DNA of 64,000 nt from Leucoraja erinacea (Eukaryota), in assembly GCF_028641065.1 (NCBI RefSeq), contig NC_073389.1, positions 27,652,001-27,716,000 of the forward strand, written 5' to 3'. The first letter of the stretch is position 1. Each line of letters starts with the position of its first letter. This document shows positions 422 through 61,345 of the stretch, piece after piece. The notes beneath the pieces are model-generated. The model worked only from the letters and a program-made list of their open reading frames with translations. It was not told the origin of the DNA and did not search any database. The translations under genes were made by a program, and so were the position numbers.

Positions 422-733
422 GATGAGGCTCTCACAAGGGTCTCCTCGATATCCCGCAGCTCCGCTCTCACTCCCCCTCCCCGCTCTCGTAACAAGGAGA
501 GAGTCCCCTTTGTCCTCACCTTCCACCCCATCAGCCGTCGTATACAACATATTATCCTCCAACATTTTCACCACCTCCACAGGAATCCTACTACAGGTAC
601 TGGCCCCTTCTTCCCATCTCCACCCCTTTCTGCTTTCCGCAGAGACCGTTCCCTCCGTAACTCCCAGGTCAACTCGTCCCATCCCACCCAAACCACCCCC
701 TCCCGAGGTACTTTCCCCTGCAGCCGCAGGAGG
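422..733 (+). mobile_element. Penelope-like element fragment, RT-to-endonuclease linker
   Basis: Open frame from 422: DEALTRVSSISRSSAL...RVPFVLTFHPISRRIQHIILQHF...PPLSAFRRDRSLRNS...GTFPCSRRR; same sequence family as 26920-27110. Confidence 0.75.
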
Positions 734-6012: not shown

Positions 6013-7623
6013 TATCTCTCAAAATACTGAGTATAATTTAACACGCTGTGTATAGTGTTAATGCTTGGCCAACAGTGCCATACACTCGAGTTCCAAACTT
6101 TAATTTGTTTCAAATTAACTTTATTTCAAATTGTTTCAAATCAATGACTTGTCCCACCCGGTCATTCCTTCTTCTCCCCGCTCCCACCCAGCAGAAAATA
6201 CAGAAGCTTGAGAGTACACACCAACAGACTTAGGAATAACTTTTTCCCCTCTGTTATCAGGTTTCTGAATGGTCCTTCCTTAAGCTAGGGTACTGTCCGA
6301 TTCACCGCTATCCCATTGCGGGCATTGGACTTAGTCTCTGAAACTGATGCGCTACATTGCAGAGAATTATACTCTGCACTCCGTATCTTCCCCTCTGCGC
6401 TACCTACTGTACGCGAGTTTGGCTAGTTTGTACCTATGTATGGTATTATGTGATCTGTTTGGATAGCGTGCAAAACAAAGCTTTTCAGTCTACCTATTAA
6501 GATTTAATAGGAACCCGAGGGGTAACTTATCATTCAAAGGGTGGTAGGTGTATGAAAGGAGCTGCCAGAGGAGGTAATTGAGGCACGTATAATCGCAACG
6601 TTTAAGAAACATTTAGACAGGTACATGGATAAGTTGGTTTAGTGGGAAATGAGTCAAATGCAGGCAGGTGGGACTAGTGTCGGTGTAGGCAAGTTGGGCA
6701 CAAGGGCCTGTTTCCACACTGTATGATAATGACAATTATGACATTTGGATTGACATATAGATAGGAAGGGTTTAGAGGGCTATGGGCCAAATGCAAGCAA
6801 ATGGGACTAGATCCATGTGCCAAATTGGTTGGCATGAACAAGGTGGGCTGAAGGGCCTGTTTCTGCCCTGTATGGCTCCATGACAGATCACCTAATTTTG
6901 CTGCCAGTTATAGTGTCGAGATAAAACGTATGTCCTTGTACATTTTCCTCTGCATGAGAAAGCAGATAATTTCTCTGCACTTCCTAAGGTCAAATGGCTG
7001 AATCTGTAACAATTCCTCAGTGCAGCTGGCACTTAAAGATAAAGCAGGAACATTTACCAGCATGACCTACCCTAGTCCGAAACCCGAGAAAGCAAAAATT
7101 AGAGACAAAAATAGCAAGATCATTGATTGAACAAAATTCAAAACTTAACACTACGAACTCCAACTAAACTCTGACACACAAACTGTCTTTGTTGCAAAAA
7201 GGACTTTGAGCTTTCTTTTGTTTTGGACTATATATATTTTTATTTATTGAACTTTTTTTTGTTTAGCTCAATAGCACAGTGATAAAGTTGCTGCCTCACA
7301 GCCCCAGAGACCTGGGTTCAACCCTGACTGTGGGTGCTGTCTGTACGGAGTTTATACATTTTCCCTGTGGCCACGTGGGTTTTCTGTTTTTTCTGGACCA
7401 TGGGTGCTCTGGTTTCCTTACACACTCTAAAGATGTACAGGTTCATAGGCTTCAGTAAAAATTGTAAATTGTCCCTAGTGTGTAGGATGGTGCTGGTGTA
7501 CAAGGATCAGTGGTCGGCATGGACTCGGTGGACTGAAGGGCCTGCTTCTGCGCTGTAAACTAAAAAGTAAACTAATGTGTTATCTATGATTATAGTCTTA
7601 TCATATAGTATTATAGTGTTATC

Positions 7624-7657
7624 AGTCTGAAGAAGGGTTTCGGCCCGAAACGTCGCC
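7624..7657 (+). ncRNA. Putative minimal type I hammerhead ribozyme (Penelope pLTR type), core intact
   Basis: CTGAAGA(7627-33) A GGGT-TTCG-GCCC GAAA CGTC: hammerhead boxes, stem II with UUCG loop, palindromic ACGT helix III. Local stem I is only about 2 bp; activity untested. Confidence 0.6.
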
Positions 7658-8816
7658 CGCTGCACCCGCTGAGTTTCTCCAGCATTTTTGTGTACCTTCG
7701 ATCTTCCAGCATCTGCAGTTCCTTCTTGAACACTGTTATCTATGATTACTGTGTTTACAGACTTGCAATGCTGCTGCAAGTAAGAATTTCATTGTTCTAT
7801 TTAGGTACACAAGACGATAAAACACTTTTGACTCTTGGCCCTCAGCAGTGCTGCCTGATCTGCTGAGTTACTCCAACTCATTCTTTTGTAAACCAGTATT
7901 TGCAAGTCCTTGTTTCAACACACTTCAACACTTTGTGTATTTTTAGTTTAGTTTTATAGATATAGCATGGAAACAGACTGTTGGGCCCAACAAGTCTGCG
8001 CCCACCATCGATCTCCCATTCACACTAGTTCTACATTATCCCACTTTCTCATCCACTCCCTACACACTAAGGACCAATTTACAGAGACCAATTAACGTAC
8101 AAACCTGCACGTCTGGGATGTGGGAGAAAACCAGAGTATCCAGAGAAAACCTGCGCGGTCACAGGGAGAACTTGTAAACTCCACGCACAGACAGCACCCA
8201 AGGAGAAATTTATTTAGTCAGAGGGTGGTGAATCTGTGGAATTCATTGCCACAGATGGCTCTGGAGACCAAGTCATTGGATATTTTTAAAGCGGAGATTG
8301 ACAGGTTCTCGATCAGCAAGGGTGTCAAGGGCGAGAAGGCAGGAGAATGGGGTTGAGCAGGAAAGGTAGATCAGCCATGGTCGAATGGCAGAGCAGACTC
8401 GATGGGCCGAATGGCCAAATTCTCTTCCTATGTCTTATGGTCAGGATCGAACCTGGGGTGCTGTGAGGCAGCAACTCTGCCAGTTGTTTTAATACATATC
8501 CCACTTTAATACAAATCAAACTGTTGCAGGGGTGAAGTAACAATGTAGCACATGTGTACATTTGTAACAAGGAGCAGTAGTGGAGTCCCACAGGGATTGA
8601 GTGAGGCGGGAGGGAGGAAACGAGAGGAGGCAGAGGAGGGGATGTGGGGAGGAATGGAAGGAAAGAAGGAGGGAATGGGGGTGAGTGAGAGGGAGGGAGA
8701 ACGCAGGGTGAGAGGAGAGAGAGGCGGGAGGGAAGGAGAGAGCATGGGAGGGGAGGAGAGGGGAGAGAGAGAGGGAGCAAAGATCCTAGAGAGAGGTGGG
8801 AGTGAAGAAGGAGAGT

Positions 8817-13235: not shown

Positions 13236-13532
13236 TTAGTTTAGTTTAAAGATACAGCTCGAAAACAGGCCCTTCAGTCCACAGAGTCTGCACCGATCAG
13301 CGATCCCCGCACACTAACTCTCCTACACACTAGAGACAATTTAACAGAAGCCAGCTAACCTACAAACCTGTTCATCTTTGGAGTGTGGGAGGAAACAAAA
13401 GCTCCCGGAGAAACCCCATGTGGTCAGAGGGAGAACGTACAAACTCCATACAGATAGCACCCGTGGTCAGGATCAAAGCAGGGTCTCTGGCGCTGTAAGG
13501 CAGCAGCTCTACCACTGCCCCACCGTGCCGCA
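13236..13532 (-). mobile_element. V-SINE (HE1-like)
   Basis: Same family, antisense. Confidence 0.8.
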
Positions 13533-16255: not shown

Positions 16256-17506
16256 GCATGCTTGACTAATCTTCTGGAATTTTTTGAGGATGTAACTAGG
16301 AAAATGGACAAGGGAGAGCCAGTGGAGGTAGTGTACCTGGACTTTCACAAAGCATTTGATACGGTCCCACATGGGAGATTAGTGGGCAAAATTAAAGCAC
16401 ATGGTATTAGGGGTAGGGTACTGACATGGATAGAAAATTGGTTGGCAGGCAGTTAAACAGGGATTAACGGGTCCCTTTCAGAGTGGCAGTCAGTGACTAG
16501 TGGGGTACCGCAAGGCTCAGTGCTGGGACCGCAGCTATTTACAATATACATTAATGATTTAGATGATGAGATTAAAAGTAACATTGGCAAATTTGCAGAT
16601 GACACAAAGCTGGGTGGCAGTGTGAACTGTGAGGAGGATGCTATGAGGATGCAGGGTGACTTGGACAGGTTGGGTGAGTGGGCAGATACATGGCAGTTGC
16701 AGTTTAATGTGGATAAATTTGAGGTTATCCACTTTGGTGGCAAAAACTGGAAGGCGGATTATTATCTGAATGGTGTCAAGTTGGGAAAAGGGGAAGAACA
16801 ACGGGATCTGGGGGGCCCTGTTCATCAGTCACTGAAAGTAAGCATGCAGGTACGGCAGGCAGTGAAGAAAGCGAATGGCATGTTGACCTTCATAACAAGA
16901 GAAGCTGAGTATAGGAGCAAAGAGGTCCTTCTGCAGTTGTACAAGGCCCTAGTGAGACCACAGCTGGAGTATTGTGTGCAGTTTTGGTCTCCAAATATGA
17001 GGAAGGACATTCTTGGTATTGTGGGAGTGCAGCGTAGGTTCACAAGGTTAATTCCCGGGATGGCATGACTGTCATAAATTGACAGAATGGAGCGGCTGGG
17101 CTTGTAAACTCTGGAATTTAGGGTGAGAGTGGATCCCATTGAAAAATATAAGATTATTAAGGGATTGTTCACGCTAGAGGCAGGAAACATGTTCCCGATG
17201 TTGGGGGGTCTAGAACTAGGGGCCACAGTTTAAGAATAAGAGGTAGGCCATTTATAACGGAGATGAAGAAAAACTTTTTCACCCAGTGTTGTTTGTGAAT
17301 GTGTGGAATTCTCTGCCTCAGAAGGCAGGGGAGGCCAATTCTCTGGATCCTTTCAAGAGAGAGTTAGAATGAGCTCTTAAAGATAGCGGAGTCAGGGGAT
17401 TTGGAGAGAAGGCAGGAACGGGGTACTGACTGTGGATGATCAGCCATGATCATATTGAATGGCGGTGCTGGCTCGAAGCGCCGGTTGGTCTACTCCTGCA
17501 CCTATT
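16256..17506 (+). mobile_element. 5'-truncated CR1-clade LINE (HER1-like), degenerate RT and 3' tail
   Basis: LTNLLEFFEDVT, VYLDFHKAFDTVPH, GVPQGSVLGP, KFADDTKLGG, RPQLEYCVQFWSP; frameshifts and stops present. Confidence 0.93.
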
Positions 17507-17747
17507 GGAGTAACTCAGCAGGTCAGACAGTATCTCTAGAGGGCGTGGATAGGTGACATTTTGAGTCGGGACACTTCTTCTGAGTCTGACACGTGTAGGT
17601 ACAGCACAGTTCAGAAGAACAGGGTCCTTTGCTGGATATCTTGCACAATGTACCTCTCCAAACCTCCTCAACTGAAAGGATGGATTAAAGTTATTTTGTT
17701 CCATTTCAATTGTCACAATAATTTTAACTAAACTTTAATCTCCTTTA

Positions 17748-18210
17748 GATAGACACAAAATGCTGGTCAGGCAGCAACTCTATAGAAAAGGAATAGGTGA
17801 TGTTTCGGGTCGAGACCCTTCTTCAGACTGAGAGTTGGGGGAAAGGGTAATTAGTGGGATGAAAAGGTATAAAGAACCAAAAAATGAAATGTATGAAAAG
17901 AACAAATCACTGTTCATACCCGCCTCGTTATCATCTCTTCCACAGCCAACAATGAACCATTGTGGGCTCTGCCTTTTCTTGAACATCCTTTCTGGCCTTG
18001 ATTTGATCTTTTCATACCTTTCATTTTTTTGTTCTTTGTATCTTTTCATACCTCCAGTTTCCCTCTCCCGTGACTCTCAGCCTGAAGAAGGGTCTCAACC
18101 CAAAACGGCACCCATTCCTTTCCTCCAGAGATGCTGCCTGACCCGTCAAGTTACTCCAGCATTTGGTGTCTATCTTCCGTGTAAACCAGCATCTGCAGTT
18201 CCTTCCTACG
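17748..18210. mobile_element. Older, longer Penelope 3'-end fold-back copy
   Basis: Inverted arms (about 17750-17900 vs 18015-18175), each with the hammerhead-like motif. Similar older copies at about 12725-12925, 19820-20010, 23935-24085, 28428-28655, 38205-38405, 50150-51810 (split), 54745-55100 and 60040-60270. Confidence 0.75.
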
Positions 18211-18382
18211 CATTCAAAGTATTTTAATTGTAATGTGTGATGTGATAGCAGTATTTGCTCATGACACTCGATAAGTATTCCAGTCGATTTATATTTTGGT
18301 TTGCGTTTTGATTTTGTTTTGGGTTGTGAATTTGACTTGGATGAATGGAGTGAAATCTTTCTGGGAAATATGTGTAAACATT

Positions 18383-19222: not shown

Positions 19223-20519
19223 TCACCTATCCATGTTTGCCTTCCAAAGTAAAGTCGGATCAAAGATAGTTTGAGGGTTTCCAGTGAGGTAGATAGTAGC
19301 TCAGGACTGCTCTCTAGTTGGTGATAGGCTGGTTCAGTTGCCTGATTACAGCTGGGGAAAAAACTGTCCCTGAATCTGGAGGTGTGTGTTTTTACGCTTC
19401 TGTACCTCTTGCCTGATGGGAGAGGGTAGAAGAGGTAGTGGCCGGGGTGAGACTGGTCTTTGATTATGCTGGTGGCCTTGTAAAGTGTAAATGGAATCAA
19501 TGGATGTTTGTGTGATGGTCTGGACTGCGTCCACAATTCTCTGCAATTTCTTGTGATCTTGGATGGAGCGGTTCCCAAACCACGTTCTTCCATTTGTGTG
19601 TTCTGTGTGCCGTCATTGACAGCAGAATTATTTGACCAAGCAACTTGGCAATAATGTTCCAGTTGGGAGGCTCACGAGTGCATTTCTTTGAACCATGCAT
19701 GTTGCAATGCCTGCCATTGTCTCGGGAGATCTGTGGAAACAATGCGTGAGAAGAATGGGTTGAGAATGTCGGAATATGCATTCATCTACTCAAACATAGT
19801 TTGCCTTTAATTGTAGACTGAAGGAACTGCCAATGCTGGCTTACAAAAAAAATACAAAGTGCTGGAGTAACTCAATGGGCCGGGCAGAGTTTCTGGAAAA
19901 CATGGGTCGATGATGTTTCGAGTTGGATCCTTCATCAGTCTGAAACATCACCTATCCATGTTCTACAGAAATGCTGCCTGACACGCTGAGTTACTCCAGC
20001 ATTTTGTGTTTTGTGCCTTAAATTGACCTCTGATTTGTGTTCCCACCATCTTTGCCATAATTCCTTGATTTATTTTACCCAATTTAAAAACATTGTCCAG
20101 TTTTCAATTGCCTAACTGGCTCTTAATCTTTCAGTTGAGAAGAAATTCCCATCGTTGTTCCTTGTTCCAAAGCAGTTAGTCAGACCCCCCATGTTGAATT
20201 GCAGCTCCCCTGGTTTAATATGCTCAGTTTGTCTATCTTGTTCTTCTAACCTACTGATCCATTAAACATTACCATGTCTCCTAATTCAGCAGCCATTTCA
20301 AACTCCGTTGTGCAACTCTACTATCTGTTTGAGAGCTACATTAAACATTTCTTGCAAACTACTTATGATGCTTGCCTGTGAGAGAATAGACCCTTTATCC
20401 ATGTTGTCTCCGGCTTGTCTATTAATGACTGAAGCACGTCACACAGGCTGCCTGCAATTCTCCCGCACTCTTGCCGTTAGTATGCAAAAGGACATAGGGT
20501 TTTGAATCAGTAGTAAGGA

Positions 20520-25934: not shown

Positions 25935-27112
25935 ATGTTATCCAGCATCTCAGGAGAAAAGGAAGAGGTGATTTTTCGGGTCGACACCCTTCTTCCGAAT
26001 GAGAGGGTGCAGGAAAACTAGAGATATGAAAAGGAATGAAGAACAAATTTCATAAGTCATAGGAGCAGAATTAGACCATTCGGCCCATCAAGTCTACTCT
26101 GCCATTCCACCATGGCTGATCTATATTTCCCTCTCAACCACATTTTCCTGCCTTCTCCCCATAACCCCTGGCACTAATCAAGAACCTATGAATCTCCAAC
26201 TTAAAAATATCCATAAAAAATGAATCAAAAGGTGTACAAAAGAGCAAATCAAAGCCAGCAATCATGATCAAGGAAATGTGGAGCCCACAGTGGTCCATTG
26301 TAGGCTGTGGAGAAGGTGATAATGTGAAACTAAGCAGGACGACAGTGATACTAGTAGGGCGACTAGGGTGGGGGAGGGACAGAGAGAGAGAGGGAATGCA
26401 AGGGCCACTTGAAGTTAGGGAAATCAATTTTCATACCGCTGGATTGTAAGCTGCCCAAGCAAAATATGAGGTGCTGTTCCTTCAATTTGTGGGTGGCCTC
26501 TGACAATGGAGGAGGTCTAGGACGGAAAGGTCAGTGTGGGAATGGGAGGTGGAGTTAGAGAGCTTGGTAACCAGGAGATCGCGTAGGCCAATGCGGGCTT
26601 GGCGAGGTGTTCAGCGAAACGATGGCCCAGTCTGCGCTTGTTCTCGCCGATATATAGGAGTGCACACCCAGAACTGTGGATACAGTAGTTGAGGTTGGAG
26701 TTTAATGATTCAGTACTGCTTTATTTATCACAAATGCAAGTGCATATATTACACATGCGGGCGCCGCCATTTTTGGTTGCATTATTATTCAAAGTCTGGT
26801 CGGCCCACCTGGCCATCTTTGGGTCCCGAGGGCGCCCCCTGCAGCCTAGGTTGAAGGCGTTGGAGGCATAACACCGGATCACCCTCCTCCATGGGGAGTT
26901 ACAAGTGAACCTCTGCCTCACCTGAAAGGACCGTTGTGGTCCCTGGACAGAGTCGAGGGAGGAGGTATAGCGACAGGTGTTGCACCTCCTGCGGTTGCAG
27001 GGGAAAGTACCTGTAGAGGGGGTGGTTTGGGTGGCAAGGGATGCGTTAACCAGGCGGTTGCGGAGGGAAGGGTCTTTGCGGAAAGGGGTGGAGATGGGAA
27101 GATGTGGTCCAT
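25935..27112 (-). mobile_element. 5'-truncated Penelope-like retroelement: Cys linker, degenerate GIY-YIG endonuclease, 3' UTR/pLTR; carries nested inserts
   Basis: Minus strand, with frameshifts: GTFPCNRRRCNTC...RQRFTCNS|SNLNYCIHSSGCALLYIGENKRRLGHRFAEHL...HKLKEQHLIFCLGSLQSSGMKIDFPNFK, running into the decayed hammerhead-type repeat at about 25965-25998. CR1 tail nested at about 26050-26215. Confidence 0.8.
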
Positions 27113-30100
27113 GGATACCTCGAGAGGATGGGTGAGCTGACTGGGGGCAAACCTCCCATGCCCTGGGTGACGATCTGGGGCTTCCGAGGTCGGCTGCGGA
27201 AGGCGAGGGGACGGCGCGCTTTGTGTTAATTCCCAGAATCGCGTTTTACACAAAGTAACATTTTTATTTTCCTCTGCGTTACTGATTTACCAACTTTGGG
27301 ATAGGGATTGCAAATGTGTAAATTAGGCACAATATTTCTTTTGGAGATGCAAGGAACTGCAGATGGTGAAATCTGGAGAAAAGTGGAAGCAAAATGAATG
27401 TCAGTATTATTTTCTTTGGATAATTCTTCTCAGCATTGAGTCCCTTCGCAATTCTATTCTAGCACCTTGTTATTCGATACACAAGGAACTGCAGGATCTG
27501 GAAACTCAAGCAAAACACAAAATGCTGGAGGAACTCAGCGGGTCAGGCAGCATCTGTGGAAGGAAATGGACAGAACACATCTCCCTGCACACACACACCC
27601 TGCCTGACTTGCTGAGTTCCTCCAGCAGTTCGTGGTTCATTCAAGATTTCAGCTTATCTGGTTTCTTGTGCATCCTGGGATAATAATAATAATATGATTC
27701 GGTTTATAACGAAGCATGGTGGGAAATAAGCTGGGTTTCTGTAGGAAAGTTGTGATGAAGGGTCAAGTAGCTGGGAGAAGGCAGGAGAATGGGGTTGAGA
27801 GGGGGAGATAGATCAACCATGATTGAATGGTGGACGAGACTATGGGCTGAATGGCCTACTTCTGCTCCTATGACATGGACTTGGGTCATAGAGCCATACA
27901 GCGTGGAAACAGGCCCTTCGGCCTAACTCGCCCACATTTCCCAGCTACACTAGTCCCACTGCCTGCATTTGGCCCATATTGCTCTAAATTATCAAATGTT
28001 TCTGAGATTTTCTTAAACATCTGCCTCAACTATCTCCTCTGGCAACCCATTCCATATGCCCACCACCATTTGTGTGAAACGTTACCCCTCAAGTTCTTAT
28101 TAAATATTTCCTCCCTCGCCTTAAACCTGTCCTCTGGTTCTTGATTCCCCTACTATGGGCAAGAGACTCTATGTCTCCCGATCTATTCCACTCATGATTT
28201 TGTATACCTCTATCAGATCACCCCTCATCCCTGTGCACTCCTAGGAATAGTCCCAGCCTGCTCAACCTCTCCCTGCAGCTCAGGCCCTTGTGTCCTGGCA
28301 ACATCCTCGCAAATCTTCTCTGTACCCTTTCCATCTTATGGCTGAACAAATTCCTTTTTTCTTGCCGTTCAAATAACCAGCATGAAATTGAAAATCGTTT
28401 GACGTTACCGAATCTTGTGGAGACAAGGAGAACCGCAGATGCTGGGATCTTGTGTAGAGCATAAAGTGCTGGAGGAACTCGGCGGGTCAGGCAGCATCTG
28501 TGGAGGGAATGGATGGGCGACCTTTCAATCTGAAGAAGGGTGTCCACCAGAAACGTCACCCGTCTGTGTCCTCCACAGATGCTGTCTGACCCACTGAGTT
28601 TCTCCAGCACTTTGTGGCTCTTTTTGTAAAGCAGCATCTGCAGTTCATTGTGTCTACATGTGTGGTGTTTGCATGAACTGGCTGTGATTGCTTGTGCTTC
28701 CCTCAAGTGCTCCAACGCTGGTTGTGAGTATAATGGCTGATGTAAATGCACAATTGGGACATAAAACTGAGGAGCGTGGTGGAGGGGCATGTGAGAAAGA
28801 ATAAGCTGCAGGAAAATGGGACTGGTGGAAATGCTCTAAAAGCTGGCATTGACTTGATGGGGTGAATGGCCTCGAATGTCCCAGGGAAACATGAGAGGTG
28901 TAACAAAAGTAGTGGAGAGGAAACGTGAGTGAAATGGCTTCTGGAAAACTGATAACATTTTCTGTAGTCCTTCATAAGGTTGTTCACTGAAATAGAAGCT
29001 TGTGAAATTGAATGCAAGTTATTGATCTAGCTGAGTAGTATGAGAGGCTGTAAAGATAATGGCTGTGCAGGTGTGACAAGTCGTGTCCCTCAAGGTTAGG
29101 TAATCTAAGTCCAACTATTCACTTTTTATAGCCACGTTTGATGACTGGCTGTGTATCCAATCTTGCTAATGTTTTAGACGTAAAGGACATTGACAGCAGT
29201 ATAGATAAATTAAGATTCAAAGATTAATTGAATGAGCAATACAGCTAAGACATTTCAACCTAGACAAGTGTGAAGCCATTCATTTTAGACTTAAAAGTGA
29301 CTGAATGTACAGTAGATAACACAGAACCAGTGTGAGTGGGTTGCTGAGGACTCGTTGGGTCTAAAAATCTTTTTTCAATGCTGTATCACTAAACTAAACT
29401 GAAGATCGATTGATTTGAGCGAACACCGAAACAAAATTTCAACCTCGATTGTAGACATAAAGAATGGATAGAACATAGATAGAACGTAGAACAGTACTGC
29501 ACAGGAACAGGCCCTCAGGCCACAATGTCTGTGCCAATCATGATGCCAAGACGAGACACATCAAGTCAAGTCAAGTTTATTTGTCACATACACATACGAG
29601 ATGTGCAGTGAAATGAAAGTGGCAATGCTCGCGGACTTTTGTGCAAAAGACAAACAACAAAACAACAAACAACAACATGGTGCTGGAGTAACTCAGCTGG
29701 CCGGGCAGCATCTCTGGAGAACATGGATAAGTCACATTTTGGGTCAGGAACTTAATTCAGATTGAAAGTTCCCCACCCAAGACGTTACCTATCCATGTTC
29801 GCCAGAGATGCTGCCTGATCTGCTGAGTTACTCCAGCACTTAATGTCTTTTTATGTAAACCAGTATCTACAGTTCCTTGTATCTGCATGATATCAAGGTA
29901 GGAGAATGGGGTTGAGAGGGAAAGATAAATCAGCCATGATTCAATATTGGTGCCAACATTATGGGCCAAATGGCCTAATTCTGCTCATATGAATTGTGAA
30001 CTATGAATTTATCACTTCCGGACCCTAATAATCTGAAGCTATTTGTTTACATGAATATGCTGCTGTGGCGATGAGGAACATCTTTGCATTGTTGAGGCTT

Positions 30101-35940: not shown

Positions 35941-36194
35941 CACAAAAATGCTGGAGAAACTCAGCGGGTGCAGCAGCATCTATGGAGCGAAGGAAATAGG
36001 CAACGTTTCGGGCCGAAACCCTTCTTCAGTGAAGAAGGGTTTCGGCCCGAAACGTTGCCTATTTCCTTTGAAGAAGGGTTTCGGCCCGAAACGTTGCCTA
36101 TTTCCTTCGCTCCATAGATGCTGCTGCACCCGCTGAGTTTCTCCAGCATTTTTGTGTACCTTCGATTTTCCAGCATCTGCAGTTCCTTCTTGAA
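35941..36194. mobile_element. Young Penelope-pLTR-derived fold-back insertion with 14-bp TSD
   Basis: Perfect 88-bp inverted repeat, 35941-36028 vs 36069-36156; TSD tacctcct(c/g)tggct at 35927-35940 and 36195-36208. Confidence 0.85.
35998..36031 (-). ncRNA. Putative minimal hammerhead ribozyme, antisense to PTGFRN, core intact
   Basis: Reverse complement reads CTGAAGA A GGGT-TTCG-GCCC GAAA CGTT GCC. Confidence 0.55.
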
Positions 36195-36374
36195 TACCTC
36201 CTGTGGCTGTTTCACACACCCACCACCCTTTGTGTGAAAAAGTTACCCCTCAAATTCCTATTATATCTTTCTCCCTTCACCTTAAACCTTTGTCCTCCGG
36301 TTCTCGATCTCGCTACTCCTATGCAAGAGACACTGTGCGTCTACCCGAACTAATCCTCTCATGATTTCCTACAG

Positions 36375-36803
36375 TGATTCCTGATAAACTCGCTGTGCTG
36401 CCTGCAAAGTCCAGAAGCCTAACCAACACAAACCACACAGAAGGGACGCCAATGGAGATTGAGTGTGTTGCATCAACGTCAACATCGTCAACAGTTTCCA
36501 CCCATCTCTCTGTCACGTGGCAGTTGACCAAAAACGGAGGTGGTCCAGAGGACATCCTGTCCTTCACTGCAGATGATCAGTTACTGCCCGGGGCTTCGTA
36601 CACCGATCGATATTGGCACGGCGACGTTAGGATGAACTTGGAGGGAAACGGCGTCTTCAGACTCGTCGTTGACCACTTGCTGCTGGAGGACAGTGGTGTC
36701 TACTCTTGTGTGGCAGCCGAGTGGGTCAAAGAAGATGGCTTCAACTGGAAGAAGCTCCATGAGAAAGAGGCAACCATCAAAACCATCAGAGTTCAGCCAT
36801 TAG
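36375..36803 (+). CDS. PTGFRN: PTGFRN exon 3, Ig domain 2 (EWI motif reads EWV)
   Basis: Acceptor ttcctacag|; VIPDKL...IEC...THLSVTW...DSGVYSCVAAEWV...VQPL; donor G|GTACCT. Confidence 0.95.
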
Positions 36804-37092: not shown

Positions 37093-38474
37093 GTTGATGG
37101 GATAGGCTGTATGCGCAAGATTTGCGTGTGATAATTAGTGCTCTCAAAACCGGGAAGGAATTAAAGGGAGGTGTATTTTGCAAAATCTGCATTATATTTG
37201 ACTAATCTTAGCAGAATCAAATTGAGAATACACAGGTACATGGTTTAAATGCGAGGGGACCAAGGGGACACTTTTTCCTTAGGGTTACGAGATTGTGGAA
37301 GGTGCCTTTATATACATCGAAGATAATAGACACAAAATGCTGGCGTATCTCCCAAAAACATCGCCTATTTCTTTTCTCCAGAGATGCTGCCTGACCCGCT
37401 GAGTTACTCCAGCATTTTACATAGAAACATAGAAAATAGGTGCTTGAGTAGGCCATTTGGCTCTTCGAGTCAGCACCGCCATTCAATACGATCATGGCTG
37501 ATCATCCAAAAATCAGTATCCCGTTTCAGCTTTCTCCCCATATCCCTTGAATCCCTTAACCCTAAGAGCTAAATCTAACTCTCTTGAAAACATCCAGTGA
37601 ATTGGCCTCCACTGCCTTCTGTGGCAGAGAATTCCACAGATTGCTTTCTGTGGCAGAGAATTCCACAGATTTTGTGTCTACCTTCGGTATAAACCAGCAT
37701 CTGTAGTTCCATTGTAAGCCAACATAATTGTTGAAGCAATTCCTCTGGGTTGCTCCAAGATAATTAATTGCCAGTATCACCATGTGTGGAAAGGTTCAAA
37801 AGCTGGGTGAAGGAGATGGGTGTGGATATACAGGTATGCCAGATGCCTGGAATTACTGCTTGAAGGGGGAGTTAATGGCACAGGCATGAAGAGAGGGCTG
37901 AGTATGTTCCGAAGTGCTAGACATACTCGATGGGTTGGGCAGCATCTGTGGTGAGAATGGATGGGTGACATTTCGGGTCGGGATCCTCCTTTAGACTGAA
38001 TTCAGACTTTTTGAGAATGAAGAAGGGTCCCAACCTAACATATTGCCTGTCCATTGCTCAAGATTCCAGCATCTGCAGTTCCTTGTGCATATGCTTTGAG
38101 TAAATGTATTTCTACTAATTTTTATTTTGATCATTTGCATGACCATTAATTGCCATGACGCTTTTGGGACAGAATAGGACTATTAATCTCAGATGTAGTA
38201 GAAGCAAAGAACTGCAGATGCTGGTTTACAAAAAAAATACACCGTGCTGGAGTCCGGCAGCGTCTCTGGAAAGCATAGATGGGTGATGTTTCGGGTTAGG
38301 ACCCATCTTCAGACTCTGTAGAAGGCTCCCGACCGGAAGCATCACCTATCCATGTTCTCCAGAGATGCTGCCTGACCCACTGAGTTACTCCAGCACTTGG
38401 TGTCCTTCATCGAGCTTGAAATACTCTTTGCAGGGAGGAAGTTTTTACTAAAGAATGTGATTTCTGTGTTACAG

Positions 38475-38858
38475 CCCAGACTCTAAACGTCTCTGCAAGC
38501 GGAGGGACCCTCATGTTGAACAAAGGTGACGAGATTGATCTTGTTTGCAGTGTAACTGGTGCCGATGACTTCAGTGTTGAGGTTGGCTGGTATTTCAGCA
38601 CATCTCTGCCGACGGATACTCAAAGCAGCAAACTTCTGGTGCACATGAACCTTGCAGCCATCGTCAACAACTCGGACTTTGTCACGTTAAACAGGATTAG
38701 CGGCAGCGAATACAGACTGAGAGTGCAACAAGCCGACGAAGGAGACAGTGGATATTACTACTGTGCTGCCTCTGTTTGGGTCCCACATACCAATGGGTTA
38801 AAGCGCAACGCAGCAGCGAAGACCTCCGATCCTCTCCACGTCACTGTGACACTTCTAG
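38475..38858 (+). CDS. PTGFRN: PTGFRN exon 4, Ig domain 3
   Basis: Acceptor gtgttacag|; AQTLNVS...DLVC...EVGWYFS...DSGYYYCAASVW...VTLL; donor G|GTAATC. Confidence 0.95.
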
Positions 38859-39841: not shown

Positions 39842-40553
39842 CAGGTTTGTAGGTTAGTTGGCTTTGGTAAAAGATGTCCCTAATTTGTAGGAAAATGCTG
39901 GAGTACGTGTGATTACTGGTTGGCGTGGACTCGGTGGGCTGATGGTCCTGTTTCCACACTGCATGTCTAAACTACCAAATTAGCCTTCAGATAAGATTCA
40001 CAAAGTGCTGGAATAACTCAGCAGCTCAGGGAGCTTATCTGGAGAATATGGATAAGATAGACACAATGCCTTGCCTAGCAAGAGCCTATCAATATCCAGA
40101 GGTTTTTAGGGTGTTATTCAGATCCTGGCTATAAATCACCCTTAAGTTTCCTGTTTTGATGCATTCTAAATTTTTAGGTTAGAGATTAGAGAGATACAGT
40201 GTGGAAACAGGCCCTTCGGCCCACCAAGACCATGCTGACCAATGAGCAAGCTGTACACTAGCAATAGCATTACCGAAGTCCAGTAACCTACACACCTGCT
40301 CGTCTTTGGAAGGAGACAGAAGCACCCAGAGAAAGCCCACAGAGTCACGGGGAGAACGTACAAACTCCATACAGAACCATGGTCTCTGGCCTGTAATGCA
40401 GCAACTCTAATGCTGCACCACTGTGCCGAATGTGAAAGGTTAATTCTGAAGAAGGGTTCCGACCAGAAATGTCACCCACCAATGTTCACCAACATTCTGT
40501 GCACTTTTTTGTGAACTAGCATCTGCAGTTCCTTGTGTCTCTCTGAAAGATTG

Positions 40554-40554
<1 letters not shown>

Positions 40555-40593
<39 letters not shown>
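40555..40593 (+). repeat. (TTGA)n microsatellite
   Basis: About 10 direct units. Confidence 0.9.
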
Positions 40594-40595
<2 letters not shown>

Positions 40596-41110: not shown

Positions 41111-41400
41111 CCCCGACCTGAATCGTCACCTGTCCATGTTCTCCTGAGATGCTGCCTGACCTGCTGAGTTACTCCGGTACTTTGTGTCCTTTTGTGAGAG
41201 GCAAACCTCTGTTTTATAAACTGACATCTGGACAGGTACATGGATAGGAAAGGTTTCGAGAGATACGGGCAGGAGGGCCTAGTGTGGATGGGGCATATAC
41301 GTACGCGTAGGCAAACTGAGATGAAGGGCCTATTTCCATGCTGTATGATGATGACTCTGTGCAGTTGCTTGTGTCCACATCTCTGTTCTAATGTTTGCAG

Positions 41401-41823
41401 ATCCCACGTACACCGTTCTCTCCAGATCCCTGAGGATGCCCAATTCCTCAGGGGACGCAGCGGAACTTGAGTGCGAAGTGTTGGACTTGCACAACGCTGA
41501 TGAAGCCAAGTTAACCGTGGCCTGGACCTTCAAGCCGAGCGTGTCCAATGGAGTTGCTGGTGAGAGCGGGCTGATAGCGGAGATGGATCAAGATTGGACT
41601 CTGAAACTGAACCCTCGCTATAACGAGCGAGCCCAAAAGGGAGAGATAACCTTTACCAAACCCATGCCACATACGTTCAAGTTTCAGATGCAGCATGCAT
41701 CTGTCTCTGACAGAGGGGAATATTTCTGCAACATTTCTGCCTGGGTTAAACAACGAGGAAACACGTGGATGAAAAAACAGGAAATACTTTCCTCTGCTAT
41801 TGTTATGGTCTGGAAAACTGAAG
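41401..41823 (+). CDS. PTGFRN: PTGFRN exon 5, Ig domain 4
   Basis: Acceptor tttgcag|; DPTY...ELEC...TVAW...MDQDWTL...DRGEYFCNISAW...WKTE; donor G|GTAAAA. Confidence 0.95.
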
Positions 41824-42833
41824 GTAAAATGCCCCTCAACTTTCTGTGAGGACATTGTTCCCCTGACCAGTTGCTATGCTGTTATTTTCTTTGGGGGTGA
41901 CACTGTGCGCAATTTTGGAGTTGCTGCCTTACAGCGCCACAAGCTGCGGGTACTGTCCGATTCATCTCTACCCCATTTCATCTCTACCCCATTGCAGACA
42001 CTGGACTTTGTCCATGGAACTGGTGCACTGCAATGCCGAGTGGATGATATAGTGGCACAATTGGTAGAGCACAGCTGGCGGAGGTAAAGAGCCTTACAGC
42101 CCCAGAGACCCGAGTTTGATTCTGACCTCAGCTTCTGTCTGCGACAGTGGGGGTTTCCTCCGGGTGCTCCGATTTCCACCCACATCCCAAAGATGTGCGG
42201 TTTAGTAGATTATTTGGCCCTCTGTAACTTGCCCCTGGTGTGTAAGGAGTGGATGACAATGTGGGATAACATAGAAATAATATGAACAGGTGATCACTGG
42301 TCGGCATGTACTCGGTGGGTCAAAGGGCCTGTTTCTTGCTGTATATCTAAACTTGCCGACCAACATGTTCCATCTACACTAGTCCCACCTGCCTGTATTT
42401 GACCCATATCCCTCTAAACCTGTCCTATACATGTACCTGTCCAAATGGTTCTTAAACATTGCCTCAACTACCTCCTGCGGCAGCTCGTTCCATACACCCA
42501 CCGCCCTTTGTGTGAAAAAAACAGATGCAGCATGGAAACAGCCCCTTCGGCCCATCAAGTCTACACTGACCCATTCACACTAGTTCTATGTTATTGAACT
42601 TTCTCATCCCCTCCGTACACAGTAGGGGCAATGTACCTACCAACCTGCACGACTTTACAACGTGGCAGGAAACCAGAGCACCCAGAGGAAACCCACGCGG
42701 TCACAGGAAGAACGTGCGATCTCCACACAGACAGCACCCGTAGTCAGTATCGAACCTGGCTCTCTGGTGCTGCGAGGCAATGGCTTTACCAGCTATGTCA
42801 CTGCTGCCCCTGGGGATGGCGTGAGCTGTTTTA

Positions 42834-46013: not shown

Positions 46014-46153
46014 GTATACAAAAATGCTGGAGAAACTCAGTGGGTGCAGCAGCATCAATGGAGCGAAGGAAATAGGCAACGTTTCGGGTCGAAACCCTTC
46101 TTCAGACTTTTGTGTACCTTCGATTTTCGAGCATCTGCAGTTCCTTCTTAAAC
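46014..46153. mobile_element. Same young fold-back element, perfect 14-bp TSD
   Basis: aaagtaaagaccag at 46000-46013 and 46154-46167; inverted segment joined to the direct 3' end gcatctgcagttccttcttaaac. Confidence 0.85.
46075..46107 (-). ncRNA. Putative minimal hammerhead ribozyme, antisense to PTGFRN, core intact
   Basis: Reverse complement reads GT CTGAAGA A GGGT-TTCG-ACCC GAAA CGTT GCC. Confidence 0.55.
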
Positions 46154-49375: not shown

Positions 49376-49955
49376 GTGTAGGGACGAACTGCAGATGCTG
49401 GTTTACACCAAATATGGACACAAAACGCTGCAGTAACTCTGCAGGTCAGGCAGCATCTCTGGGGGAAAGGAATAGGTGACTTTTCGTGTTGACTCCTTTC
49501 TTTAGACTGAGAGTCAGGTGAGAGGGAAACTAGAGGTATGAAAAGGTACAAAGAACAAATGAATTGTACTTGGGCAGCTTATAACCCGATGGTATGCATC
49601 TTGATTTCTCTCATTTCAAGTAACCCTTGCATTCCCTCTCTCTCCATCCTTCCCTCGACTAGTTGTCCTACCAGTTTCCACTGTCATCCTGCTTAGTTTC
49701 ACTGTTTCTTTCACCTCCATCACCTTTTCCCACAGCCAACAATGGACCATTGTGGGCTCCACCTTTCTTGATCACCATTGCTGGCTTTGATTTGTTCTTT
49801 TCACACCTTTTATTCACTTGTTTTTTTGTACCTTTTCATACCTCTAGTTTCTCTCTCCCCTGACCCTGAAGATGGGCCTTGATCCGAAATGTCATCTATT
49901 CCTTTTCTCCAGAGATGCTGCCTGACCCGCTGAGTTACTCCAACAATTTATGTCT
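49376..49955. mobile_element. Penelope 3' fragment with inverted 5' arm
   Basis: Inverted pLTR arm at 49376-49560, then a + strand GIY-YIG end (LGSL*PDGMHLDFSHFK*, 49570-49623), 3' UTR and pLTR. Confidence 0.75.
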
Positions 49956-50225
49956 TATCTACCAGAGAACAAGACTCCAGTGCTTCATTCACCCTGTGCG
50001 AAGATGTATCAGCTGAAAAAGGGTCCCGACCTGACCTGAAACCATCTGCCTATCACCCCCCCCCCCTCGCCTATATCCACCTATCACTCCCTGCCTGAGC
50101 TCATCTGTTGCCAGTCCTGATCTGTCCTGGCTTTTTCTTCCTACCCCCCACCGCCCTTTTCTACAATCAGTTTGAAGAATATCCTGACTCAAAACGTCAC
50201 CTATCCATGTTCTCCAGAGATAGAC

Positions 50226-51575
50226 AATAATAATAATAATAATAAATACTTTATTGATCCCCTCAGGGAAATTCAGATGTCCAGAAGCCCCCAACCAACA
50301 AACCCACAGATTCAAAACGAACGCAGACAGAAAATACATAGAATACACTGTGGACACTACCTGAGAGCAATAAATACTTAAAAAGACCAATAATTAACAA
50401 TTAAAAATTAAAAATTGCAAGAATGCATCCCCCTACAGCCTAGCGGTCCGAATTATAAAATCTAATGGCTGCAGGGGTGAAGGATCTCCTGAACCGCTCC
50501 GTTCTACAGGGCAGGGAGAGGAGCCGGTTGTTGTTCCGAGTGCTCTTTTGACTCTCCAGAATTACATGGAGGGGATGCCCGGGGTTTTTCAGGATGACCT
50601 GCACCTTGTGCCTCATACGCCTCTCAAGCACATCCATCCCAGAGTCCACTCTCCCCTCCAGCACTGAGCTAGCTCGTTTAACCAGTTTGACCAGCTTCCT
50701 GTTGTTTTTTGCACTAATGCTGTTGCCCCAGTAGACAACAGCGTAGAAAATAACACTTGCAACCACAGTGTTGTAAAAAATGTGCAGCATGTCATTACAC
50801 ACATTGAAGGATTTGAGGCTTCTGAGGAAAAAGAGTCTGCTCTGGCCTTTTTTGTATAGGGGGTCAGAGTTGACAGACCAGTCCAGTTTGTTATCAAGTT
50901 GCACTTATGTCTGCACCACCTCAATGTCAGCCCCAGCAGTGTTGACCGGCTGAAGGGGGAGCTTGGACCTGCCAAAGTTAACCACCATCTCTTTAGTCTT
51001 AGTTGTGTTCAGGATGAGACAGTTCTCTTCACTCCAGGCACAAAAGGAACTGGTCAAGTTCCTGTATTCCTCCTCCTGCCCGTTCCTTACACATGCCACA
51101 ATCGCTGTATCATCTGAATATTTCTGTACGTGGCATGTGTCAGACTTATAGTTAAAGTCTGCTGTATACAGGGTGAAGAGGAACGGGGCCAGAACCGTTC
51201 CCTGTGGGGCACCAACATTGCACACCACTGTGCCAGAGACACTGTCCCCCAGCTTGACAAACTGTGGTCGACCCGTCAGGTAGCCGTCTATCCAGGAGAT
51301 AAATGTGGAATCCACCCCCATCTTCTTAAGCTTGTCATTCAGAATCAGGGGTTGGATGGTGTTGAACGCACTTGAGAAGTCGAAGAACATAATCCTCACA
51401 TAGCCACCGGGTTTGTCCAAAAAGGAGTAGATCCGGTGCAGCATGTAGAGGACTGCGTCATCCACCCCAATGTTCTCCTGGTATGCAAACTGTAGTGGGT
51501 CGAGTGCGTGCTGGACTTGTGGTCTCAGGAGACGAATGAGTAGCCGCTCCATTGTTTTCATGATATGGGATGTAA
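50226..51575 (-). mobile_element. 5'-truncated Rex1/Babar-type LINE, RT and C-terminal region, (ATT)n tail
   Basis: LDPLQFAYQ, DFSSAFNTIQP, GAPQGTVLAPFLFTLYT, KYSDDT, LNTTKTKEMVV, RTERFRRSFTPAAIRFYN; tail gaatttccc..gggatcaataaagt(att)n; one stop at 50905-50907. Confidence 0.9.
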
Positions 51576-53448: not shown

Positions 53449-56400
53449 TTTATTTGGCTCACATCCCTCTAAACCAGTCCTATCCATACCTGTCTAAATG
53501 TTGCTTAAATGTTGTGAGAGTACCTGCTTGAACTACCTCCTCTGGCAGCACCTTCCATACACCCACCATCGCTTGTGTAAGATAATTGCCTCTCAGGTTC
53601 CTATTAAATCTTACCCCATCACCCTAAACCCACAGTCCTCTGGTTCTTGATTCTCCTACTCCGGGTAAAAGACTCTGGGCATTCACCCTGTCTATTCCTC
53701 TCATGATATTACGGAGCTCATTTCAGGCAGAGTGACGGGTTCCAACCTAATGCTGCTACAGCCTCTAGTTAAACATTGCATTCAGCATTAAACTCTTTCC
53801 TTGTGGACTAATCTGCCCCAAAAAGCAATGGGTTTTTTGTCTGCTGATGAGAGCAACATGATCTCGGCTATTTCCAGGGAGATCCAGAAGTTGCATTTTA
53901 ATTGGTTAATTTCAATAAGTGGAAACATTTAATTGCTGCCTTGGAACATGTTGTAGATACGATGAGGATGTTTAAGAGGCTTTTAGATAGGCAGATGTAT
54001 AGGTTGGAAATGGAGGGGTATGGTTCATGTTTAGTATAGTGTAGAGATACAGCATGGAAACAGGCCATTAGGCCCACACGGTTCTTGTCGACCATTGATC
54101 ACCCGTTCACACTGGTTCTGTTATCCCACTTTTGCATCCACACCCGACACAACGGGTAGTCAAGAGGTTAATTAACCTACCAACCTGCACCTCGTTGGGA
54201 TGTAGTAGGAAGCCCAAGTAGTCAAGATGAGAACTTGCAAACTCCGCACAAACAGCACCCGAGGTCAGGATTGAACCTGGGTCTCTGACTCTGTGAGGCA
54301 GCAGCTCTACCCGTTGCACCACTGTGCCGCCTTGTGTGTAGGCAGATGAGATTAGTTTATCCTTGTATCATGTTCAGCACAAACTTTGGGGGCTGAAGGG
54401 CCTGTTCCTGTTCAATCCATGGGTTGAATTGTATGCCAGTGCATATTATACACAAATTAAGGTTTCAATACTGATCCAGTTATCTAACAGTGTCTATCTG
54501 TCAGGAAATAAAAGAAAAAGCAGGTGATCCAAATTTCTATCTGGATTACATTATTACAGGTGCATTGGTCCAAGGCATTTGGTCTGACAAATGTCCATGA
54601 TTGCAAGGTACTCTAACTTTATAATTCCTGCATTTTCTTAAAGGTTCTTGAGCAAGTAGACATTACTTGCCAGACTGGTTGTACAGCCCTCCAGTCTTCA
54701 ACCTGTAATAGCAAATGAAAAAGCAACGCTATCTCTGGCTCAGATGCAAAATGCTGGAGTAACTCAGAGGATCAGGCAACATCTCTGGAGAAAAGGAATA
54801 GGTGGCGTTTCGGATCAAGAGGCTTCTTCAGACTCGGGGAGAGAGAAACTAGAGGTATGAAAAGTTACAAAGAGCAAATGAATGAAAGGTGTGAAAAGAA
54901 CAAATCAAAACTAACAACAATGATCAATGGAGCCCACAATGGTCTGTTGTAGGCTGTGGAGAAGATGATACAAACAGTGGAACTAAGCAGGATGACAGTG
55001 AAACTAGGGTGGGGGAAGGACAGAGAGGAAGGAGATGCAAGGGTTACTTGAATGAACACCACTGGGTTGCAAGCTGCCCAAGTGAAACATGTGGTGCTGA
55101 ATGCCACACGGTCACAGGGAGAACGTACAAGCTCTGTACAGACAGCACCTGGAGTCTTTAGCACTGTAAGGCAAACATTTTTCTTCGGCGAGAGTATGGG
55201 CAGAATAAATGGGAGGGTAGTTGGAAGGGAATATTGGGTGGACTTTCTTCCCACCACCATCAATGTGATGAGACACTGAAAAGGCTGCCTTCCCAGTGGG
55301 GATGGAATGAAAAATCGTGGCGTTGCCAACAAAGATTAGCACGATGGTAAAAAACTGCGCGCACTTTAATCTTTCTGCTTCCGCACCATCTGATCAAAGT
55401 CAGCCAAACTTTGGGAGGGAAATAAGATATATTAATCTCCTTCAAATATCCCTTGGGAGAAGAAAGGGCTAGTGGCTAGCATCACTATCAGTCGTAAGGG
55501 ACAGTCACGGGGTGAAATGATTCAATAGCAATGTGACCTGTGCCACCACTACCTGCACTCCTACATCTCTCTGCTCTACAACACTCCCCAGAATGGTAGG
55601 GCTCTGGGTATGTTTAGAGCAGAGAGATCGAGGAGTGGACACAAATTGCTGGAGTAACTCAGCGGGTCAGGCAACTGTCAGAGTACTGAGTATAGAAGTT
55701 GGGAGATTGTGTTCCTGGTACATAAGATGTTGGCGAGGCCTGATTTAGAGTATTGTGTTCTGTTTTGGTCACCAGGTTATAGGAAATATATTGTCAAGCT
55801 GGAAAGGGTGCAGAAAAAATTTGAGGATGTTGCCAAGACTCAAGGGCCTGAGCAATATGTTGAGCAGACTAGGAGGAGTGGAGTGCAGATGAGGGGTGAT
55901 TTTATAGAGGTGGACAAAATCATGAGATTAATAATGTAGGGTATTGCAGAGTAGGGGAATCGAGAACAAGGGGGTAGATTTAATAAGAACCTAAGGAGTA
56001 ACTTTTTTTACTCAGAAGGGTGGTGGGTGTATGGAACAAGCTGCCAGAAGAGGTAGTTGAGGCAGGTACTATTGCAACATTTATGAAACAGTTAGACAGG
56101 TACATGGATAGGACAGGTTTAGAGGGATATGGGCCAAACACAAGCAGTTGGGATTACTGTAGATGGGACATGTTGGTTGGTGTGGGCAAGTTGGGCCGAA
56201 GGGCCTGTTGCCATGCTATGACTCTCAGCAAAAACATTTCCACTACTGCCATTTCCTTGTTGATCTCTTTATCGTTGAGTAGCAATTATTGTTCACATGT
56301 GTCTCACATTGCATTATTTAAATACCTCCATAATGTTAAAAGTTGGAAAAACTGGCACTTACTTCAGGCACTTACTCAGGCACTTTAACCCGCCGTGGAG

Positions 56401-61061: not shown

Positions 61062-61345
61062 GGCGGCACGGTGGTGCAGTGGTAGAGTTGCTGCCTCACA
61101 GCGCCAGAGACCCGGGTTTCATCCTGGCTACGGGTGCTGTCTGTGTGTGTGGAGTTTGCACGTTCTCCCTGTGACCGCGTGGGTTTTCTCCGGGTTCCCC
61201 AGTTTCCTCCCATACTCCAAACACGTGCGGGTTTGTAGGTTAATTGGCTTTGGAAAGAAATGTAAATTGTCCCTAGTGTGTAGGAAGGTGTTAGTGATCC
61301 CTGGTCAGCATGGACTAGGTGGGCTGAAGAGCATGTTTCCACATG
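61062..61345 (+). mobile_element. V-SINE (HE1-like)
   Basis: ggcggcacggtggtgcagtggtagagttgctgcctcacagcgccagagacccggg head. Other copies at about 62989-63283 and 63893-64000. Confidence 0.82.

Follow-up and report, generated by a model that had tools for sequence, protein, structure and literature searches.

What is the short repeat that recurs through a 64,000-nt stretch of the Leucoraja erinacea genome (assembly GCF_028641065.1, contig NC_073389.1, positions 27,652,001 to 27,716,000; hereafter the window, numbered from its first letter), and what is the block resembling a minimal hammerhead ribozyme that it carries? A first account made from the letters alone (hereafter the sequence-only reading) had described a high-copy, non-autonomous, retrozyme-like family, derived from Penelope elements, bearing a minimal type I hammerhead and easily misfiled as a miniature inverted-repeat transposable element (MITE) or a short interspersed nuclear element (SINE). 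Minimal hammerheads in the pseudo-long terminal repeats (pseudo-LTRs) of Penelope-like elements are reportedly also treated by Lunse, Weinberg and Breaker in 2017. We find that the repeat in all probability represents the last 100–135 nt, at the 3' end, of a retrotransposon of the Penelope-like group, and that the block is this element's copy of the minimal type I hammerhead motif. The family can be added, with good support, to a known group, that of Penelope-like 3' ends with a minimal hammerhead motif.

A Conserved Hammerhead Motif in Dozens of Copies

Positions 7627–7654 of the forward strand read CTGAAGA-A-GGGT-TTCG-GCCC-GAAA-CGT-C. Allowing at most two mismatches, the general form CTGAAGA-A-GGGT-N4-RCCC-GAAA-CGTY has 12 matches on the two strands of the window and none in 100 dinucleotide shuffles, and a relaxed core pattern matches 32 times where 1.2 matches are expected. 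With a profile derived from nine long copies and spanning the whole unit, 70 family pieces were identified on both strands of the 64 kb; they cover ~9% of the window, and 41 of them include the motif. The dozens of copies on both strands claimed by the sequence-only reading are thus confirmed, and the unit that it had placed at 7621–7732 coincides exactly with a profile match. Its description of the motif also held for helix II, said to remain paired while the loop varies, and for helix III, said to be reduced to the palindrome ACGT. Stem I, for which it gave 2–4 bp, lies at the low end of that range, with only two contiguous pairs found.

Helix II (GGGT/RCCC) has 4 bp and is closed by G10.1-C11.1. 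Across 32 copies, 80% of cells are paired, and pair changes are limited to G-C becoming G-U and U-A becoming U-G. Loop II is TTCG, CTCG, CCCG, or GTCG according to the subfamily, the core being unchanged among subfamilies; the deviating loops CCTG and CCCA, like the helix III variants ACAT and ATGT, look like products of CpG decay. The CTGAAGA columns are 87–97% conserved across copies, the non-CpG core columns (CTGAAGA and GAA(A)) 85–98% conserved in 40–53 copies, and an extra A stands between A9 and G10.1 in 88% of copies. Helix III is the 4-nt palindrome ACGT, with CG at positions 15.2–16.2, and has decayed to ACAT or ATGT in many copies. Position H17 is C in 37 copies, T in 11, and G in 2, and is preceded by ACGT, so that the A15.1-U16.1 pair is present. 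A strict descriptor is still satisfied by only five window copies, and in three of them, which all belong to the young subfamily (S1), ACGT is preserved with C or T after it.

From 5' to 3', aligned copies consist of a variable few bases, the motif block, a 13-nt segment that varies between subfamilies (conservation 0.5–0.8), the conserved blocks CTCCAGAGATGCTGCCTGACC and CTGAGTTACTCCAGCAYTTTGTG (~0.9), and a variable spacer, followed in about half of the copies by an additional conserved block, CCAGCATCTGCAGTTCCTT. Of the four conserved islands in the unit, one is the motif. A comparison of the core with its neighbours, which the sequence-only reading had named in its refuting condition, gave a core conservation across subfamilies of ~0.9, above that of the segments on either side (0.5–0.8) and equal to that of the putative reverse transcriptase (RT)-entry blocks; the core therefore stands out from its immediate neighbours, though not uniquely.

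Linkage of the Motif to a Penelope-Type Open Reading Frame

In three copies the motif and the end of a Penelope-type open reading frame (ORF) are contiguous; the clearest of these copies occupies 25970–27245. In the two others (49376–49958 and 54742–55098), the last ORF codons were likewise recognized upstream of the motif by alignment and translation. Because an ORF stop, a 365-nt 3' untranslated region (UTR), and the motif follow one another without interruption, the motif belongs to the untranslated 3' end of a Penelope-like element. For the ORF next to the copy at 54808 there was no Pfam match, and the ORF end was recognized there by alignment and translation only.

The ORF fossil at 26366–27245 encodes, in order, a linker (GTFPCNRRRCNTC) with a C-x4-C-x2-C arrangement (FPCNRRRCNTC), a GIY-YIG core (LLYIGENKRRLGHRFAEHL), and a C-terminal stretch (EQHLIFCLGSLQSSGMKIDFPNFK) ending at a stop. 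Pfam returned a weak GIY_YIG_2 match for it (E-value 0.015). When a 174-amino acid piece of the fossil was compared with 1.84 billion representative sequences, 346 relatives were found at E-values of 0.001 or less; seven long relatives (794–924 amino acids) match the piece through their residues 640–825. All seven contain an RVT_1 domain and six a C-terminal GIY-YIG domain, just below the Pfam cutoff; their alignment shows a KPADKGG (DKG) motif, YIDD, the C-x4-C-x2-C linker, and the GIY-YIG core. In tblastn searches these seven proteins are colinear with the minus strand of 26506–27182 through their residues 640–856. An extra zinc-finger-like linker has been described for the Neptune and Nematis clades (PMC8557442), and since the linker preceding the GIY-YIG endonuclease carries C-x4-C-x2-C, the element is probably of Neptune type.

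RT sequences occur elsewhere in the window, as RVT_1 fragments at 50440–51648 (minus strand) and 16493–17068 (plus strand), neither of which adjoins a hammerhead unit on the same strand. The former is followed by an ALKBH8_N-type region and looks like part of a long interspersed nuclear element. A PDB sequence search with the two window fragments was uninformative.

The Same Motif Class beside Related Open Reading Frames

We scanned 80 metagenomic loci encoding relatives of the fossil ORF with a descriptor made of CTGANGA, 0–1 nt, a helix of at least 4 bp closed by G-C, and GAAA. There were 30 matches on the ORF strand, in 28 of the 80 loci, and a single one on the antisense strand, with ~0.1 in shuffles; most of the 30 are found 160–870 nt after the ORF match. 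These motifs share features that the descriptor does not contain. The extra nucleotide after A9 is an A in all 24 relatives that have one; a 4- or 6-nt palindromic helix III followed by a non-G nucleotide is present in 24 of the 30, compared with 9% of all GAAA sites; and helix I, in 24 relatives, is made of 3–6 contiguous pairs, varying in sequence from locus to locus and covarying. Stem II takes 18 different sequences. Two loci carry the motif twice on the ORF strand, L028 at 2489 and 3703 and L040 at 30 and 3449; in L040 the two motifs flank the ORF, a pseudo-LTR arrangement without counterpart in the window. The window motif fits the class of its relatives in all respects but the length of helix I. 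The covariation seen among the relatives appears to support the motif class, not the helix I of the window family itself.

Signatures of Penelope Insertion

Penelope insertions are characterized by strong 5' truncation, by an adjacent inverted 5'-truncated copy, and by a tail of 30–40 bp that is often found at one end only (Craig et al., PMC8557442). RT can start at two neighbouring internal sites, and it is the interval separating them that forms the tail; extension takes place on both strands of the target (Frangieh et al., PMC11167929). The 3' ends of the window copies fall into two classes: ~30 short pieces end shortly after CCAGCATTTTGTG, and ~27 long ones extend a few bases past CCAGCATCTGCAGTTCCTT. 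Where target duplications bound the copies, the two ends are 33–41 nt apart. The motif lies ~60–100 nt upstream of the 3' end of the insertion. There are ~15 head-to-head pairs, always a minus arm then a plus arm, of which ~9 are tailed on one arm only. The arms of pairs are unequal, and solitary arms also insert alone. Five target duplications are well supported (12, 13, 14, 15, and 17 bp), four of them flanking whole pairs and one the single unit at 7593–7733.

At the last-mentioned locus, the whole insertion bounded by the 15-bp duplication extends from 7593 to 7733. Its S1 unit (7621–7733) is 90–95% identical to other S1 copies and has an internal deletion of ~23 nt relative to 36067–36195. 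The S1 pair at 35941–36194 holds a 39-bp internal tandem duplication with an extra copy of the motif (36030–36107, two copies according to Tandem Repeats Finder). The family is abundant and old, with S1 as its one young subfamily.

The copies can be accounted for by a mechanism taken from the published work on Penelope. RT would start inside the RNA at either of two adjacent entry sites, each directly after a CCAGCAT box that could pair with an upstream GATGCTG, and copying would proceed through the hammerhead toward the 5' end. Extension of both cut target strands would yield fold-backs, and most complementary DNAs (cDNAs) would reach a discrete 5' end of the RNA ~3 nt before the core, leaving short "mini-elements". 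Helix III would need two copies of the motif to form.

In the sequences, GATGCTG has two alternative partners, CAGCAT just ahead of the short 3' end and CAGCATC within the tail (e.g., 18131–18137 with 18186–18192; columns 57–63 and 114–120 of alignment A2). GATGCTG/CAGCATC was the sole pairing predicted by RNAalifold from 12 long copies. These two alternative stems, each located just before one class of 3' end, may mark the two RT-entry sites.

A Discrete 5' End Next to the Core

To locate the 5' ends, we took alignment starts relative to C3 from a profile that includes 120 nt of the 3' UTR. Most copies begin ~3 nt upstream of the core: the starts of 28 of 44 lie between −9 and +1 of C3, and none falls between −28 and −10; eight copies run at least 29 nt upstream, seven of these reaching at least 116 nt into the 3' UTR. 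Where both arms of a head-to-head pair are complete, their junction falls at −3 to +1, and a smaller group of arm ends is found within helix II, at +10 to +20. A discrete 5' end of the template RNA thus seems to exist at ..TCAGT/CTGAAGA. Three causes are conceivable: an initiator (Inr)-like start site may be present, the upstream ..CTGACTCTCAG/T may act as a splice acceptor, which it resembles, or RT may stop at this point. If the Inr-like start holds, the short units are run-off cDNAs reaching from the first RT-entry site back to where transcription begins, and a separate lineage is not needed to explain them. In Drosophila virilis, the Penelope terminal repeat contains a TATA-less internal promoter made of an Inr and a downstream promoter element (DPE; PMC2377424), whose start site is ~120 nt upstream of the hammerhead (PMC4209133, PMC2377424); an intron of that element ends at helix I (PMC4209133).

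These ends lend some weight to a reading in which the block, although of hammerhead descent, is now kept as an internal core promoter or as a handle for a protein, with transcription starting at the Inr-like TCAGT ~3 nt upstream, so that the short units would be full-length cDNAs from the first RT-entry site to the 5' end of the transcript. The clustering of 28 starts, the empty interval upstream of them, and the meeting point of the arms would follow naturally from such a start, as would the loss of helix I alongside a core conserved across subfamilies; the Inr and DPE of D. virilis offer a precedent, and in the Anolis element cleavage needs a protein and is dispensable for insertion in vitro (PMC11167929). 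However, the D. virilis start is not adjacent to the hammerhead, the sequence ..CTGACTCTCAG/T is equally splice-acceptor-like, and the ends may be due to an RT stop. We consider this reading rather unlikely. Similarly doubtful is the proposal that the short units are a distinct parasite or by-product of Penelope, namely a 100–135-nt RNA with its own internal start, ~3 nt ahead of the core, that contains only the core block and an RT-entry site, its core being conserved across subfamilies despite the loss of helix I. If this were true, the block would be a promoter or a protein handle, not a self-cleaving ribozyme.

Evidence Bearing on Self-Cleavage

Several observations weigh against the identification of the repeat as a Penelope 3' end with its hammerhead. 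The window holds ORF fossils only and no full-length element, the RT part of the copy at 25970–27245 is missing, and no direct pseudo-LTR pair, in which a direct repeat of the unit flanks an ORF, was found in the window. Helix I consists of two contiguous pairs (U-A or U-G, and G-C) in short units and 3' UTR copies alike, with the third and fourth positions mostly unpaired, against 3–6 bp in every relative measured. The published consensus for helix I is 4–5 bp, and a helix I as short as 2 bp is published for the atypical motif of D. virilis only (PMC4209133). Two checks suggested by the sequence-only reading came out negative. Rfam gave no hammerhead match, either for the whole window at the gathering score or for two loci at E-values up to 10, an outcome to be expected because the models require a helix III hairpin that minimal hammerheads lack by definition. 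No stem II pair was changed on both sides in the window, and the covariation score was below that of shuffles; decay of the copies and a nearly invariant stem II make covariation within the window uninformative. The minimum-energy folds predicted do not surpass those of shuffles (z-scores −1.4 to +0.6), and the fold of S1 favours a competing GUUUCG/CGAAAC hairpin, made by the TTCG loop, together with pairing of the core to the tail end CCUUCUUGA. Last, of 63 pieces only ~5 have their start 5 nt or less from the predicted cut, no more than the neighbouring bins contain. Such a disregard of the cut agrees with the result obtained in Anolis, in which unprocessed RNA serves as template.

Homology of the motif to the Penelope hammerhead is very likely. 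Efficient self-cleavage without a protein helper is unlikely because helix I has only 2 bp, and the motif may be weak or vestigial.

The same observations bear on the suggestion that the short units form an independent, non-autonomous retrozyme-like family, whose dimers would cleave themselves at GUC/GUU, circularize, and be copied back into the genome. The S1 copies, at three loci (7621–7733, 35941–36194, and 46014–46150), are 90–98% identical to one another, include all three of the fully intact motifs, and never occur with the 3' UTR or the ORF in the window. A discrete 5' end just before the core, shared by 28 of 44 copies, could likewise be that of an independent unit, and a 2026 preprint derives animal retrozymes from Penelope pseudo-LTRs and reports them in the sole cartilaginous fish sampled (10.64898/2026.07.22.740005). 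Nevertheless, Tandem Repeats Finder detected no head-to-tail array of whole units in the window, the two-copy duplication of 39 bp at 36030–36107 being the only tandem, and the boundaries of the units do not fall on the predicted cleavage site, as those of a cleaved and religated circle would. Helix I of 2 bp and an S1 fold that disfavours the hammerhead also argue against it; moreover, published Penelope minimal hammerheads cleave poorly in vitro (PMC4209133), and the Anolis element inserts without cleavage (PMC11167929). This explanation therefore appears quite improbable to us. What survives of the sequence-only reading is the descent from Penelope with a minimal type I hammerhead, as attested by the contiguity with the GIY-YIG fossil, the tail, the inverted pairs, the target duplications, and the motifs of the relatives. 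Its terms "retrozyme-like" and "non-autonomous family" are not supported, given the lack of head-to-tail arrays beyond the 39-bp internal tandem and the fact that the copies are explained as Penelope 3' ends.

That reading was also right that the units are easily mistaken for MITEs, many copies being fold-backs. A MITE origin was ruled out: target duplications of 12–17 bp that are not of fixed length, unequal arms, and solitary arms all argue against it. An RNA polymerase III-type SINE was ruled out as well, since ARAGORN found no tRNA-like head in the window and Rfam nothing at the gathering score. That such an element merely happens to hold CTGANGA, a hairpin, and GAAA can hardly be believed: the many MITE-like fold-backs, one of which (35983–36074) draws sub-threshold microRNA-precursor matches, and the absence of covariation within the window would suit a chance resemblance, but a GIY-YIG ORF end and the block are contiguous, the arms are asymmetric with a one-sided tail, target duplications range from 12 to 17 bp, single arms insert alone, the window has no tRNA-like head, and motifs of the same class, sharing features that the descriptor does not contain, stand beside related ORFs in unrelated samples.

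Comparison with Known Hammerhead-Bearing Elements

The closest likeness is to the minimal hammerheads of Penelope elements. [quoted passage not shown] The extra nucleotide, the G10.1-C11.1 pair, and the palindrome are all present here; families exist too, but without compensatory changes. Also shared with the motifs of that study are the CUGANGA and GAAA core, a palindromic helix III that needs two copies, a high copy number of mostly single dispersed motifs, sometimes in opposite-strand pairs 100–700 bp apart, and a site near the 3' end of an element encoding RT and GIY-YIG. The window motif differs in its helix I (2 bp vs. 4–5) and in its helix II (4 bp vs. commonly 6–8).

Poseidon PAc of Anolis carolinensis (PMC11167929) likewise has a hammerhead upstream of two adjacent internal RT starts, whose interval of 30–40 nt forms the optional tail, and both target strands are extended. 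The main template of PAc is unprocessed RNA, which fits the window copies, whose ends are not at the predicted cut. However, the ORF of PAc starts inside helix II and its RT start is ~85–92 nt after the cut, whereas the block of the window family is in the 3' UTR with three closed frames and its 3' ends are ~60–100 nt after the cut. The Anolis arrangement, with the ORF beginning within the unit, was ruled out from the profile consensus, in which all three frames are closed. In addition, PAc belongs to the Poseidon clade, whereas the linker in the window suggests Neptune.

Animal non-LTR retrozymes (PMC7229834; Li, Clavereau and Pollet 2026) are also short non-coding units with a type I hammerhead and kinship to Penelope terminal repeats. 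They form head-to-tail arrays, are bounded by cleavage sites, and give circular RNAs (PMC7229834), whereas the window units are dispersed or head-to-head, and their limits are a 5' end ahead of the core and the RT-entry sites. With the dimeric hammerheads of the newt satellite and of the SINE-like repeats of Schistosoma, the window motif has in common its type I topology and an unstable helix III, functional only in the form of a double hammerhead. Those hammerheads have a helix I of 5–6 bp with loop–loop contacts and reside in tandem satellite or RNA polymerase III-type units; neither is true of the window family.

What makes the family interesting is that helix I is nearly lost although the core is kept, that a discrete 5' end lies beside the core, and that the one-sided tail is very clear.

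Features of the Window and Their Genomic Context

Coordinates of the main copies and of their parts are collected in table 1.

Table 1. Hammerhead Units, ORF Fossils, and Target Duplications in the Window
Feature	Position	Strand	Basis or remark
Second Penelope-type ORF fossil, region before the endonuclease	425..733	+	tblastn with seven full-length relatives, E-values down to 8e-15
Left target-site duplication TGTTATCTATGATTA	7578..7592	.	Exact 15-bp direct repeat with 7734–7748; score reached by 0/200 random controls
AT-rich filler inside the duplication	7593..7620	+	Resembles target sequence; matches no other copy
S1 unit: 5' end ~3 nt before core, hammerhead motif, RT-entry block, tailed long 3' end	7621..7733	+	Profile match 7621–7732, alignment
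Core C3-U4-G5-A6-A7-G8-A9 (CTGAAGA)	7627..7633	+	Sequence, pattern matches
Extra unpaired A (7634); helix II GGGT/GCCC (7635–7638 with 7643–7646); loop TTCG	7634..7646	+	
G12-A13-A14, palindromic helix III A15.1-C-G-U16.1, C17; predicted scissile bond 7654/7655	7647..7654	+	
Right target-site duplication	7734..7748	.	Matches 7578–7592
Head-to-head pair of longer copies, each with part of the 3' UTR upstream of the motif; one arm short, one tailed	17744..18211	.	
Older head-to-head pair, tail on minus arm only	19815..20013	.	12-bp target duplication
Decayed motif of the ORF-end copy, CGGAAGA-A-GGGT-GTCG-ACCC-GAAA-AAT-C	25970..25997	-	
3' UTR, 365 nt, ORF stop to hammerhead	25998..26362	-	Alignment, blastn, profile; common to 17744–18211, 49376–49958, 54742–55098
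C-terminal fossil of Penelope-type ORF, broken by frameshifts and stops	26366..27245	-	Three-frame translations
S1 head-to-head pair: minus arm short-ended, plus arm tailed	35941..36194	.	14-bp target duplication 35927–35940/36195–36208; arms 97.7% identical
S1 unit, short 3' end, head-to-head with an inverted piece of the last ~42 nt including the tail	46014..46150	-	17-bp target duplication 45997–46013/46151–46167
Head-to-head pair: plus arm with last ORF codons, 3' UTR, motif, and short end; minus arm tailed	49376..49958	.	13-bp target duplication 49361–49373/49960–49972
5'-truncated copy: ORF end (..HLGSLQPSG..), 3' UTR, motif, short 3' end	54742..55098	-	

A second abundant repeat family, unrelated to the hammerhead units, is represented by ~40 pieces (e.g., 7286–7567, 13240–13523, and 61071–61339) and contains GGTCGGCATGGACTCGGTGG.CTGAAGGGCCTG; one of its copies is directly upstream of the hammerhead insertion at 7593–7733. 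A (GATT)n microsatellite (40549–40594) directly follows the long 3' end of the copy at 40441–40541. The perfect fold-back at 35983–36074, formed by two young units, gives matches to several microRNA-precursor models in Rfam of at most 52 bits, below the cutoffs of 81–95; these, the only matches in the Rfam searches, are a generic effect of hairpins.

V-set immunoglobulin domains were recognized by Pfam in three ORFs or exons on the plus strand (36374–36801, 38473–38858, and 41391–41849). Contigs from three sequencing runs join 36374–36801 to 38473–38858 without mismatch. Since the exons are joined exactly, these runs are RNA, and the repeats between these exons are intronic. An immunoglobulin-superfamily gene is thus expressed here, and its introns hold many repeats. 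Family sequences are contained in thousands of RNA contigs.

Significance

Fold-backs and short units liable to be filed as MITEs, SINEs, or microRNA-like hairpins make up ~9% of the window, and the label that they should receive genome-wide is that of Penelope 3' ends. Intronic fold-backs such as the one at 35983–36074 could feed small-RNA pathways. The family also provides a clean natural record of two RT-entry sites and of a one-sided tail, a process reconstituted in vitro so far for one element, that of Anolis. Finally, a core that is kept while helix I is nearly gone, in copies whose ends ignore the cut, bears on the role of the hammerhead in Penelope elements, to which this family adds a case where cleavage is unlikely to be the selected function.

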